64,000 nucleotides of DNA, from contig CAJFCJ010000014.1 of NCBI GenBank assembly GCA_904063045.1, positions 2,105,643-2,169,642 on the forward strand, read 5' to 3'. The DNA comes from Dimorphilus gyrociliatus. Its lineage: Eukaryota > Animalia > Annelida. Made by a program: the position numbers and the translations under genes. The stretch's first letter is position 1. Each line of letters opens with the position of its first letter. Below, piece by piece: positions 1-63,400 of the stretch. The notes below the pieces were generated by a model. That model was given only the letters and a program-made list of their open reading frames with translations, ran no database searches and had not been told where the DNA came from.

Positions 1-3000
1 GTAGAAGCGTCGTAATAAGTTTGATCTAGAGCTATAAACTACACACTGTCTATATAGATTAAATTATGAATATATAGACCAATTTATTACTGTTTAACTC
101 TACTAAATCGATTTACTAGTGTTACAGTTTAAACAGCCGCAAAAATTTACAACAATTCAAACTGAACTTTTCTCATTATTGGAGATTTGAATAGATATTT
201 ATTGACGGATCGTCTCCTTTTTGTAAATATATTTTGAATTGCCTTCTGGCCTTTCTGAATTTCTACAATAGGGCTACAATAACGCCAGAATGAAAGGTAA
301 ATAAATAGAAAGGCGGCTATAAATTGGATTTTCTTTGTGCCTGTTTCTGTCCGAGGTTACATAACACTATATCTGCTTGTCGATTAGCGCTTCTAAAATT
401 ACAGATAGTGATTGATAAACTGAAATGCTGGAATGTTGCTATCTTGGTGTTTTAACATTTTAAGATTGCCTAAATTTTCCAACAGATCACTTTTTAACCT
501 AGTTGTAAAAGGGGGTCTAAAGGGTTTCCACATGCACCGTATCGTTGACGGCCAAAAGTGCAAGAATGTTGTTTACTGTGTAGAGATATACTGTATAGAG
601 ATATACTGTTGTATGTATGTAAAGTATATAATATATATATCTACAGTATAATTAGATATATATATATATATAGAATTTTATTGTTTACAATAGTCCAATG
701 AATTTTTCTTGTAGTTTATTTCATCCCTAAAATCTTTTTGCAATCAATCGACAACTATATCTACTAAAAGATAAATAGAAAAAAGTGAAATGTTTAATAC
801 GCTGGACGGTAGGCGTGTTAAGCATGTTTTGTTTGTAAGTTTGCCTGAATTTGTTGTGTGCGTGCGTGTATATTTGGCGCGTCTAGTATTTAATTTAATT
901 AAATGTATTAACGTGTTTTTCTCTATTTCTTTTCTTATGATCATCTATCTAACTAAATGTTATATTTATTTATCTATAAATCTTTCATTCTATCATTTTT
1001 TTTTCCTTTTCCTTTTTCTATCTTCCTCTTTATACTCTGTTATGTCTTTGCTTAAATCTTTTTCCGTTCTTCCTCTTATATCCCTGTCTCTCCTCTCCTA
1101 GATTATCCTATCTTTTTTATTAATCACAACAACAACAACAATATCAGAATTTATGCTTTTCAGAATTACCGCGTATCCATCTTACTAGACGATAATCCAA
1201 GATTATTTATGACCTATTTTATTGAACGACACTCGAAAAAATACGATTAACAAACCTCCGGTTGGCACATTATCAAATTGACGTTGATAAGAGACGCTGA
1301 TTAGGAGTAGCATTGCGAATCCATGATAAATCATTATTATATTCAAATCCTTAATTTTTTCTTGCATACCTATGGACAAGCAAATTATCGCGTCTAATCA
1401 ATAATATAACACAGTCTTTGAATAGATAAGAATAAGAGATAAGAGATAAAATGGTAAGGCTTTTAATAAGTATATATGTGCAGTATATATATATACTGTA
1501 TATATACTGTCCAGATAGATAGATATATGTTGATATGCGGTAATGTACGAATAAGTTTAATTGGCATTTTATACAAAAAGATACTGCTTGTATTATTTTA
1601 ACTAACTGATCATTACTACAATAATTACTTAAAATATTACCAGATATGTCCATATATACATATATATATATATATGTACATTATCAACTTAAACAAATGT
1701 ATGCTTTGACACTGTATTTGTATGTAAAGAGGCTTTCTTTGTAATTTTACCTTTCAAGTGTCAATCCGTTTTTAAAGGTGTTTATCTACTGTTATTCTAC
1801 ACAGATTTATTTTATTGCTTATAAAATGATTTTTATGGTTAGGATATTACTCATCTTTTAAATAGTAATAAAAAACTATATCTTTACTTTTAGTTTTATC
1901 TCTTCCTCTGATACTTTTCTTTTAATAAAGAAAAATGAAACAAAAATTGGAAAAAATGCATATATACATATATAAATATAGCACGAACCAACTCCTTACT
2001 AAAATCTCTTTGACAGAGAAGAAAGAAAATATCCAGATGTTAACTCAAACTCGTCTGACAGACGTTTGAAAGAGCTTGACTAACTATACAAACAGCGACC
2101 AATCAGCTCCTTGAAGCGAGTCACGTGACTTTTGTCCCTTGTCTTTGAAGTGTTCCGATAGGGTGTTTGGTGATTACAGAGAAAATTTTTGTTGCATTCA
2201 AGTGTCTGGTGGGGATTAAAGGGGAAGAAAACGAATGATTTTTTATTCCAAAAGATAAGTTAATACATATTTTTGCACTTGATATGCAAGGCAGGAAGTT
2301 AGCTGAGGTTGAGATTAATCGGTCTTGTCGGATACAAATCGAACGGAATTTATTAAAAGATTGGTTTTCCTACTCTTTTCTTTAATAATAGAACAAAGAG
2401 CATCAATTGACAAGGGTAACCGTTATGACGCCCGCAATAATTATACGGTTTCAAAACTCGAAATTAATAGCAATGAAAATACCATTAAGCCGGTTTTTTT
2501 AACGAGTATCTCTTGAATGAACAACCATTTTTCAACCAATAATTACTCTAATCAATTCACAGTAGAGTATACAAGAAAATATCTATTCCTCATTAAGATC
2601 ACTATAATTAGCCTATTTCATAAGTTTTATATCGATTATGCAAGTGATCGACACGCGCGAGTACAATTATTCTCTTCTCTCTTTATTGCCCTTCCTCCCT
2701 CCCCTTTTACCTTTAAATATTAAGCGTTTTGTATTTTTGACGCTTTTTTTTCTCCTATCTTTTCTTTCTATCTATTTGTCCGTCTCTCTTTCTTCCTTCT
2801 CCAATTCATCATGGAAAGAACAGATTATTTTTATTTACAAAAAAAACAGATGAAAGAAATTCTCTAACCCATATTCCCCTATAATTCTCTTTCTCTCGTT
2901 TTTTTTATCAATTAGGGAGCGTCTAAATAAATGGAAAAAAAACAATTTGAATTGAATTTTCTCTAATAAGAAATGTTAATTCGATGGAAAGAAAATATAT

Positions 3001-3558
3001 ACCAGTTTCTCTTTCTCCAATTTCCTTTCACATAATTGATATGCAAGACAGGAAGTAGGCTGAATTTGAGATTAATCGGTTTTGTCGGGAAACAAATCGA
3101 ATGGAATGCTTTAATTTTAGAACGGTGGAAAGATTGAGGAGGTAACGTGAATAATTTGAATGGTATTTGTGTCCGTTATTCAATTCAAGTGCATTTTGGC
3201 TTCACTACCCGTTTCCCATATACAGATGTTTCGGCTTCGTCAAAATACTCAATAGCCGAAAGTTACTAAATCGTCACACACAGTAACGCCATCTATAGTT
3301 ATTCATCGAGAACTATATAACCACCTCTATGCGCCATGAATCACTATAAATATGGTTTAAATTAAAGATGGTGATTAGGAGCATACCACTGTATGCACTA
3401 TAAACGGATCGTTTTGATCTTTACCCTTTTTCTTACTAAGCATATAGATGCGCTACTAAGATTATTCATTAAAAATGTTTATTTCAGAAATAAAACAAGA
3501 GAAATAAAAAAACAATTTCAGAGTATCGGTTTATAATAGTACTTTGTAATAGTTTGGT

Positions 3559-60447: not shown

Positions 60448-63400
60448 TCATGCAATACTTGATACTAGAACAGTGGTACTTACAACAATTTGAGTGTCCT
60501 TTTTAGGTTCCTTCTCGTCATTTCTTGAATTTTTCTCGCTCTCTATATCTTTCTTTTTAGCTTTATCTAGTTCCTTCTCAGCTTTCATTTTTTCGAGTAA
60601 TTCTTCCCTCTTTTTACGTCTGATCTCTTCGTGTATTTTCCTTTTGATATCAAACACTAACTCAGGATTGTTCAATAAAGTATAACATTTCCACCATCTA
60701 AATTTTATTTGGTTTCTCTTCAATTGAACTTCTTCATCGACGGCTAAAGGTGCTGCATTTTCAGGATGATCACCAATGCTACCGTTTACGGTTCTGTCAT
60801 CTCTGCTATTTAACTTATCTATAAGCATGTAACAGAAAAATCTTAAGATTGGATGGTTATGATAAAGCTCTAGATAAAGCATTCTTAGATAGGCGTTGTG
60901 ACCCGTGTCCAATTTTTCAAACCCTCTCATCAATAGGCATCTATCTGTTCTACTAATTAAAAGTGCGCCAAAAACGACAGAAAAAACGATTCTCTTGAGG
61001 CAGCCAAATACACCAATAATGACATTAAAGAAGAAAAGAAAGAATGAAATGACGTGAAAAACTCTTCGGTTATTAATAGCCAAAAACCTTCCTTTTTCTT
61101 GCAGAAATGCTAATCTGGCCAGTACTAATTGCAGAATATTTAAAATGATGCTGACCAAGACGCTTGGCCTATATATATTGGAATATGAAATAACAATTGT
61201 TTAATAAATCAATGATAGCTTACCATAAAGAGAGTAAAATTTTTATCAGCCAGTTGACATGACCCTTTAATAGAGGTCTGATAAATAGCAGAATGACAAT
61301 AGATAAGACGACTGTAATAAGTATCATAACCAATGTGAAGCCCCAGAAGAGATAAGCTATTTGATAGCCCGCATATTTAAATGCCGATACAACTGTCGAA
61401 TCCGGAGATGGGAGAGATTTTCCCATAAAATTTTTTCTTCCCTTATAAAGTTTAGCAATGTGAATCCTTAAAAAAAGAAATTATTATATAACTTAATTAT
61501 ATTAAAGATAAACAAAATATTACTTGTAGGCTATAGCCATATGAATACAAAACAAAATATGAAGCATCAATGATAGATAAATACCAGTTAGGAAGCAGCC
61601 TGTTAATTTACATAAATATATATATATATATATATATATATATACAGTGTATACAGTATATACATATACTATAAATTATGAAATATAAAGCGATAGACCT
61701 CTAAAAGTGTTGACAATAGCCAATATTTCGGTTAAGATGGATTTTGGTAATTTTCTATACTTTTCACCGTGAACCACATACAAGATAAGCTGAGAATATA
61801 GCCATTTTTAATTTAGATTTTACAACATTCAACTAATAATTCAACTTATGTAGCTATGATTTATTCATTGAAATTGAATTTTTTAAATTAATAAGCTACA
61901 AATGCCGATTTTTTTTCTTTTCTAAAATTTGGAATTTAAAGAATAAAAACCTCTGTTAAATCATCCAAATTGATTTCATCTTTTTCGGTAACTTGGTCAA
62001 TTACCGCTTCTAGTACATCGTGTAAAAATCTAAATCTCGGATCAATAGTTCTATGAAAGAAAATTGCGATCTGAATAGAAGAAAAGAAGATATTAGAAAT
62101 ATGTGTCTGTATATATATATATATATATAAATTATATATAAGTGAGCATAAAACTAATCTTACACCAAACATTCCAACAACGCCAACAGCGAGAGTAGAG
62201 CACAATCTCGTTGAAAACTTGAATCCTTTTAAAATTGAATGGAAATTTATAGAATTTAAATAAATTTATATAAATTTACCATCTAAATTCTCTAATTTAA
62301 ATTTTGTTTTTATCTTGTAAATAATGTTTTTAACCGGTCTGAAAGTAATAATAAATTAATTAGTAAATCAACTAATAATATAAATACATATGAAAATACT
62401 AACTCCTGGACTTCTTCGGGTTTAAGTAAATCTCTAACGTATTTATAAGCATTAGTTTCTATCAAAGGTACACAAAAATCGCAATTCTATAATAAAAAGG
62501 TAATAATTATTAAATACTGTTTAAAAAATAAACAAATTAGAGAGAAAGAGCAAACTATATTCTTACCCCAACGTTCTGATAGAAAGGAAGTTGAATTTGC
62601 CACTAAAAGATGAAATATAAGTCTTTAATTGTAGTAATAAAATCTTTTTAAGTAAAAATCAATACATTAATCTTGTACAAAGTGATTAAAAAAATAAATC
62701 AAAGAGAATATATAACACATATTAGATATTTGCTAATTAATTAATAAAGTTGAAGCGAAAGAATCTTATTTATTTATTGACACTTTATTTTTGACTGCTT
62801 TGCATTTTAAATACCTTTCCTAAATGCTGATATTCTGGTTTAAGTTTCTAAAGAATTGTTTTTTTAAAAAAAAAAAAGAGAATTAAAAAAAGAAATTAAT
62901 GATAGTTTTGTCAATTTTTTTCCCGTTTGTTCTAAACAGTTTTTTTCACAATTGTATAATAGGAAAAGGTGCATCTTTCTGGTATCGAGGTAACATGTTT
63001 TAATAATACAAACCTTTACTTTTCGAAGATATATTAGCTTTAGGTTGATGAATAGGTCATACAAGTAGCTGAAACTTAATACCAACATTACTAGCAGTAG
63101 AGGTATAAATCCGGCTAAACTTGTTAAGTGAACTATGTTCTGTTTTTAATAAAGCAAAACAAAGGATTAATATAATAGATTACATAATTAAATATTAATA
63201 GTAAAGAAAATGTCATATTAATAGCTTACATAGTATCCAGATCCTCGGGGTGTACAAAAGTACAACTCCCTTGTTCTAATAACCAACCAAAAGAACATGT
63301 TCCCAATTCCAACTAAATTGGCAAAAATAACCTTATGTAGCCGTACACATACAAACATTGGATAAAAGGCCAAACAAAGTAGGCATACGTTCAGCATCTT

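Follow-up and report, generated by a model that had tools for sequence, protein, structure and literature searches.

Interruptions of TA tracts by CAG or CTG in the genome of Dimorphilus gyrociliatus as probable excision scars of Tc1-type transposons

A stretch of 64,000 bases from the genome of the annelid Dimorphilus gyrociliatus (contig CAJFCJ010000014.1, positions 2,105,643 to 2,169,642; 28.9% G+C), referred to here as the window, contains 22 copies of the 11-mer TATAC(A/T)GTATA, 14 of them in the CTG form and eight in the CAG form. These strict sites are included in the 41 occurrences of the bare 7-mer TACWGTA (W, A or T) in the window, none of which (0/41) falls within its long open reading frames (ORFs). 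Such TA-C(A/T)G-TA words, here and throughout the genome, are probably scars that have accumulated through the excision of Tc1-type transposons (Tc1/mariner superfamily, with a DD34E transposase and CAG...CTG ends). An earlier note, made from the letters of the window alone, had proposed an origin of this kind; the cores lie at exactly the 22 coordinates that it had claimed, and its estimate of about 40 plain 7-mers was close to our count. The strict sites are listed below by window coordinates, with a dot in place of a strand and, where given, the number of TA units to the left and right of the triplet.

587..597 (.), scar-like site, CTG form; TA units 2/2
1492..1502 (.), scar-like site, CTG form; TA units 6/4
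8681..8691 (.), scar-like site, CTG form, where a 36-unit TA array ends; TA units 3/3
9365..9375 (.), scar-like site, CTG form; TA units 3/5
10022..10032 (.), scar-like site, CTG form, first member of a pair spaced by 9 bases; bare 7-mer at 10006
10031..10041 (.), scar-like site, CAG form, other member of the pair with 10022..10032, in opposite orientation
11226..11236 (.), scar-like site, CAG form; TA units 3/3
13680..13690 (.), scar-like site, CTG form; TA units 2/2, the minimum
16013..16023 (.), scar-like site, CAG form; TA units 5/2
23515..23525 (.), scar-like site, CAG form, within a TA array; TA units 5/7
27795..27805 (.), scar-like site, CTG form; TA units 3/4
29368..29378 (.), scar-like site, CAG form, preceded by a CA/TA compound repeat; TA units 7/3
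32017..32027 (.), scar-like site, CTG form; TA units 3/2
34334..34344 (.), scar-like site, CAG form, bordering a 44-unit TA array; bare 7-mer at 34352
35105..35115 (.), scar-like site, CTG form, directly after an exon end resembling a GT splice donor
37259..37269 (.), scar-like site, CTG form; TA units 3/2
37430..37440 (.), scar-like site, CTG form, separated by 171 bases from the site at 37259..37269
41935..41945 (.), scar-like site, CTG form; TA units 2/3
48119..48129 (.), scar-like site, CTG form; TA units 6/4
50034..50044 (.), scar-like site, CTG form; TA units 3/4
52322..52332 (.), scar-like site, CAG form; TA units 3/2
61650..61660 (.), scar-like site, CAG form, where a TA array ends; TA units 2/3

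The remaining 19 7-mers of the window, which do not have TATA on both sides, start at 642, 5058, 10006, 11526, 13882, 15950, 26894, 27364, 30968, 32336, 34352, 34524, 38593, 40596, 45569, 47002, 52514, 59715 and 59864. The strict sites had been described as mostly embedded in (TA)n. At least two TA units lie on each side of all 22, as the definition of the word demands, but only 12 of the 22 have six or more units in total and only nine have four or more on one side, so that the description is borne out only in part.

Among all TATA-NNN-TATA words of the window, CTG (14) and CAG (8) rank first, followed by CTA (6) and CAA (5). An independent sample of twenty 10-kb pieces (200 kb), drawn from 14 contigs, yielded 81 words of this form, 22 of them CAG or CTG, with eight for the runner-up. 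Window and sample together (264 kb) contain 44 strict sites, where a Markov model of order 3 predicts 0.9 and one of order 5 predicts 2.5; across models of order 3–5 the excess is 18- to 50-fold. Genome-wide counts, taken on an assembly of 77.9 Mb in 349 contigs, allowed the word to be set against three matched controls that vary the triplet, the phase of the flanking TA repeat, or both:

TATA-CWG-TATA, whole genome, 7,166
TATA-GWC-TATA (control), whole genome, 211
ATAT-CWG-ATAT (control), whole genome, 176
ATAT-GWC-ATAT (control), whole genome, 150

The enrichment over the controls in this two-by-two comparison is 34- to 48-fold, and is confined to the CWG triplet and the TA phase in combination. 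CWG accounts for 7,166 of the 8,192 occurrences of the eight composition-matched TATA-SWS-TATA words (S, C or G; 87.5%), and for 7,166 of the 29,800 TATA-NNN-TATA words of any kind (24%), so that CAG and CTG are enriched over other trinucleotides in this context, as an excision origin implies. The signal resides in the TA-tract context, and the excess is a property of the whole genome that lies far beyond chance. A general palindrome effect is ruled out, as GWC in the same context is not enriched. With a G+C content of 29–33% and many TA tracts, the genome might be thought to produce such words by chance or through its AT-rich, TA-repeat-rich composition, but an excess of this size over both same-composition controls and Markov models has already refuted that explanation, the probability of which we regard as negligible.

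The anatomy of the sites is equally distinctive in its symmetry. The CAG and CTG forms occur in about equal shares (21 vs 23 among the 44 sites in 264 kb) and, when all sites are oriented as CAG, the 16 bases on either side are equal in composition at every position (all p > 0.1); a decaying alternation of T and A is the only pattern on either flank. Neighbours 40–1,500 bases apart show the four combinations of orientation 13, 12, 12 and 11 times, with no bias towards CAG-then-CTG, and pairs less than 40 bases apart are in opposite orientation as frequently as in the same. Within the 264 kb, TACAG ends were found to lack inverted-repeat partners, no remnant of a Tc1 protein was detected, and self-comparison of the same sequence revealed no shared flanks around the sites and no usable duplicated segments with scar and no-scar copies. 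Specificity, phase, symmetry and genome-wide scale are thus all directly observed properties of the motif. The words are stand-alone symmetric insertions in TA tracts, and neither the ends of MITEs (miniature inverted-repeat transposable elements) nor mainly the products of tandem duplication.

An origin from MITEs would make each word the TA duplication plus the first bases of one of many short non-autonomous elements, of Tigger/pogo-like type, with inverted repeats starting CAGTA. Tigger-like MITEs of another animal do start TA/CAGTA... (the slash marks the insertion junction), and the same 7-mer is therefore possible at an element boundary (PMC4678618); in addition, the D. gyrociliatus genome paper reports MITEs with Mariner-like ends (PMC7854359). 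However, MITE ends are asymmetric and run into a conserved inverted repeat, whereas the sequences inside and outside the words described here are equal in composition, without conserved extension, inverted partners, flank similarity or orientation bias between neighbours. We consider this origin highly improbable.

Strict sites occur once per 2.9 kb in the window, against a genome mean of once per 10.9 kb. The high density arises because the window is rich in TA tracts, which are 2.2 times commoner there than in the 200-kb sample. For each (TA)5 word there are 0.15 strict sites in the window, compared with 0.11 in the random sample and 0.10 in sequence flanking Tc1 copies, and a feature specific to the window is ruled out by the match between its density per TA tract and that of the random sample. 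A motif density that follows TA-tract density, at a ratio of 0.10–0.15 in three data sets, is as expected of a neutral process that targets TA tracts. The word CAA/TTG is one step of decay away from the motif, by a change of G to A in CAG. There are 2,690 TATA-SAA-TATA sites in the genome and, by the 100 places listed, CAA/TTG makes up about 72% of them, corresponding to roughly 1,900 sites vs roughly 750 for GAA/TTC. The CAA/TTG excess suggests a neutrally decaying population, accumulated during a divergence that amounts to a few tenths of one C-to-T change at each site.

These distributions bear on two further explanations. The palindrome TATAC-W-GTATA could be a functional site for a dimeric DNA-binding protein, kept by selection; its perfect symmetry around a one-base centre and its restriction, in the window, to non-coding DNA are what such a site might show. 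Yet the density of the word tracks TA tracts and not gene landmarks, the sites frequently form close clusters with variable spacing, and the excess of the decay word over the GAA/TTC control (about 72:28 among the 100 places listed) suggests neutral decay, all of which makes a protein-binding site very unlikely. Alternatively, TA microsatellites might generate the word by intrinsic mutation with no transposon involved, through cruciform breakage and templated repair, or through slippage and duplication of a TATACAGTA-like unit. The location of the sites in or beside TA tracts, the scaling of their density with tract density and the absence of any directly observed conversion of element to scar all accord with such a process, as do the short arrays of periods 9, 12 and 15 reported by Tandem Repeats Finder, which include the motif. 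Nevertheless, no known process yields this single word, and the equally palindromic TATA-GWC-TATA is not enriched (211 vs 7,166). The even mixture of orientations among close pairs argues against tandem duplication as the main source, and the word is the canonical scar of elements that are resident in the genome. Intrinsic mutation is, in our view, unlikely.

The resident elements are numerous. Out of 353 candidates genome-wide, at least 150 match the Tc1-type catalytic domain DDE_3 (PF13358), many of them with open frames of 330–360 codons. One family, here called family A, consists of ten full copies of approximately 1,653 bases that are about 99% alike (for example, L009:1042-2694), with the ends TA/CAGCCGCGG...CTG/TA. 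In the terminal inverted repeats 34 of the 40 terminal bases are complementary, and TA is present on both sides of all ten copies. The ORF encodes 330 aa and matches DDE_3 (PF13358) at 69.5 bits; a match of its N-terminal part to a Tc3-type helix-turn-helix (PF01498) is weak, at 19.7 bits, and below the cut-off. Among solved structures it is closest to the catalytic domain of Sleeping Beauty (5cr4; E = 8e-30), and a count along the 5cr4 alignment shows the second D and the E to be separated by 34 residues, the DD34E signature. Further copies starting TA/CAGGG are found at L002, L003 and L006. A CAG-terminal, TA-duplicating DD34E family that inserts into (TA)n, as the proposed origin presupposes, therefore exists in the same genome, and the matching elements, their termini, target context and transposase type are matters of observation. 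A degenerate pattern for G+C-rich CAG-type ends gave 564 matches vs 386 for its control; the pattern is not stringent enough for counting elements, and all it shows is that a very large family of this form is absent.

The target context of family A resembles that of the motif, and most of its copies lie within (TA)n tracts. At positions -1, -2 and -3, family A half-sites carry A, T and A at 89, 95 and 89%, and motif half-sites at 64, 69 and 53%, compared with approximately 35% for all TA dinucleotides. Across six positions the family A half-sites alternate T and A at 68–95%, and the motif half-sites follow the same pattern more weakly. At least one side of the duplicated TA is bordered by TATA in eight of the ten family A copies, and TACWGTA lies within 20 bases of the junction in three of the ten. 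One copy, on contig C223, sits in a 9.1-kb tandem repeat (C223:6631-10065), other units of which (C5:624567-644641 and C164:6189-17082) match the C223 flanks at 99–100% and are joined at TA without the element. These empty sites confirm insertion into a TA tract with duplication of the TA. Among the approximately 9.1-kb units only that on C223 carries family A, and so either the element inserted after the repeat had arisen or C223 represents an alternative haplotype.

Several other families start TA/TAGGG instead of TA/CAGGG (L001, L005, L007 and L008). The second commonest interruption of TA tracts is a single G or C, which can be read as TATA-TAG-TATA or TATA-CTA-TATA; these words are the predicted scar of TAG-terminal elements, and equally a C-to-T decay product of a CAG scar.

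Family A also appears among contigs from sequencing runs. Contigs of two runs skip 2,367 bases at L009:992-3360, with GT..AG ends, and this is the only long joint there; the family A copy on C14 hence lies inside an intron of a transcribed gene, and the runs, presumed to be DNA, behave like RNA. The greater part of the family A ORF is spanned by RNA-like contigs, as would fit ongoing expression without proving it. One of the two intron-skipping runs has a 1,371-base contig over the transposase ORF. A run with a different organism label and from a different study (X2) has a 1,664-base family A contig corresponding to L009:1098-2686, with only five differences and no flanks. Horizontal transfer of the element might account for it, as might cross-contamination at a low level, if the ten-copy element alone reached assembly depth.

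In Sleeping Beauty, cleavage of the non-transferred strand takes place a few bases within the element, and end-joining then produces the canonical footprints TACAGTA or TACTGTA (PMC6943129). We propose a comparable route in D. gyrociliatus. An element would enter at a TA, preferably in a (TA)n tract, and that TA would be duplicated. At excision, the transposase would cut the non-transferred strand three bases inside each end, so that 3′ overhangs of CAG remain on both flanks, where they could pair C:G and G:C around an A:A mismatch. End-joining and mismatch repair would then give TA-CAG-TA or TA-CTG-TA in equal shares, and the resulting scars, being neutral, would build up over long periods in TA tracts, where substitutions would erode them. 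Sleeping Beauty-type excision of CAG-terminal elements from (TA)n thus predicts words of the form (TA)a-CWG-(TA)b, in the TA phase only, with equal A and T centres and symmetric flanks. The counts match all four predictions.

The D. gyrociliatus word is identical to the 7-base Sleeping Beauty footprint, with the A or T centre expected from an A:A mismatch (PMC6943129). The family A transposase is likewise of DD34E type and closest, among solved structures, to the Sleeping Beauty catalytic domain, and both systems prefer alternating TA targets. The footprints of Sleeping Beauty, however, are known from single engineered donor sites in cells or animals, whereas D. gyrociliatus has approximately 7,000 strict sites (an excess of up to approximately 12,500) in a wild-type genome, with no element at the sites and a mode of formation that is deduced. 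Tc1 and Tc3 of Caenorhabditis elegans belong to the same superfamily as the D. gyrociliatus elements; they too target TA and have CAG-type ends, and their scars likewise combine terminal bases with the duplicated TA. The cut made by Tc1 and Tc3 falls two bases in, and the words that result are different; the D. gyrociliatus words, by contrast, fit a three-base stagger.

Several points weigh against an origin of the words by excision. Both the three-base stagger of the resident transposases, assumed by analogy with Sleeping Beauty, and the derivation of the scars from these elements are inferred. The predicted minor product, in which both overhangs are kept (CAG then CTG between TATA), is nearly absent, with four occurrences vs one for its control, numbers that favour neither side. 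For every known CAG-type end there are more than ten scars, so that long accumulation is required. The word-count comparison covers the D. gyrociliatus genome alone, and the bare 7-mer is only 2-fold more frequent genome-wide than its reversed control (24,999 vs 12,506), which means that about half of the bare 7-mers are background and that many of those outside TA tracts are due to chance. The empty sites on C5 and C164 are scar-free paralogues. No excision joint at the L009 family A copy was found in the contigs of four public runs, in which DNA contigs break in the TA-rich flanks, and among the loci examined none was seen at which a scar had replaced the element, with both element and scar alleles. 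Excision of Tc1-type elements is nevertheless the best explanation of the words and, we believe, probably the correct one, albeit unproven at any single locus.

Some other features of the window were noted in passing:

3533-3999 (-), histone H2B gene
6198-6502 (+), H2A-like ORF, divergent from the H2B gene
18248-18460 (-), exon-like ORF
25728-26015 (-), exon-like ORF, paralogous to that at 18248-18460
33460-33531 (+), tRNA-Asp (GTC) gene
33914-33985 (+), tRNA-Asp (GTC) gene

A histone 3′ stem-loop (Rfam RF00032) follows both the H2B gene and the H2A-like ORF. The two exon-like ORFs are alike in sequence, one of them reading ..GPIAILVNMGS.., and probably derive from tandemly duplicated short-chain dehydrogenase-like genes. 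The two tRNA-Asp genes, 454 bases apart and with identical scores, adjoin the 44-unit TA array that bears the scar-like sites at 34334 and 34352.

If the words are indeed excision scars, their number and decay give an indication of the tempo at which they formed. At an ordinary animal mutation rate, the accumulation would have taken tens of millions of generations and, under the same kind of assumed rates, a genome would need to undergo, to an order of magnitude, only one end-joined excision every several thousand generations to amass some 10,000 scars. Each end-joined cut-and-paste hop leaves one scar, and so a low steady rate would be enough; neither a burst nor a purge is needed. The excision-footprint origin put forward in the earlier note therefore came through every test run (enrichment, phase, equal centres, symmetry and resident elements), but not the history attached to it. 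Massive mobilisation is superfluous where low steady hopping over a long time suffices, and clean removal of the family is not supported, given the at least 150 DDE_3 matches that remain, including the ten near-identical CAG-terminal copies. That no intact element is evident is true of the window, which lacks any Tc1 element, but not of the genome, where many of those matches have open frames. One footprint per approximately 3 kb likewise describes this TA-rich window alone and does not extend to the genome at large.

The published genome of D. gyrociliatus is 73.8 Mb in size with an annotated transposon content of 4.87%, and the animal was chosen in order to study genome compaction; neither excision nor footprints are mentioned in that paper (PMC7854359). 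The word itself is the textbook footprint of Tc1/Sleeping Beauty-type excision. As to a natural, genome-wide population of it, in a limited literature search we found no paper describing scars that dominate TA-microsatellite interruptions and outnumber elements more than 10-fold across a genome. The test that reveals this population, TATA-CWG-TATA against three controls, is a simple k-mer comparison that is applicable to any genome.

A more far-reaching interpretation, which we put forward as speculative and rather doubtful, is that end-joined excision has long outpaced re-insertion in this compact genome. Tc1-type elements would then be lost continually, their scars piling up as a direct, countable record of a removal route that contributed to keeping the genome small, and Tc1 traffic would be a main shaper of TA microsatellites, responsible for a quarter of their three-base interruptions. 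Transposon annotation counts only those elements that are still present. If the words are scars, they would provide a second, independent record of cut-and-paste activity, amounting to approximately 7,000 to 12,500 events as against a few hundred Tc1-like copies, from which historical hopping rates, target preferences and the balance between loss and gain of elements could be estimated. A large share of the interruptions of TA microsatellites in D. gyrociliatus would be explained at the same time.

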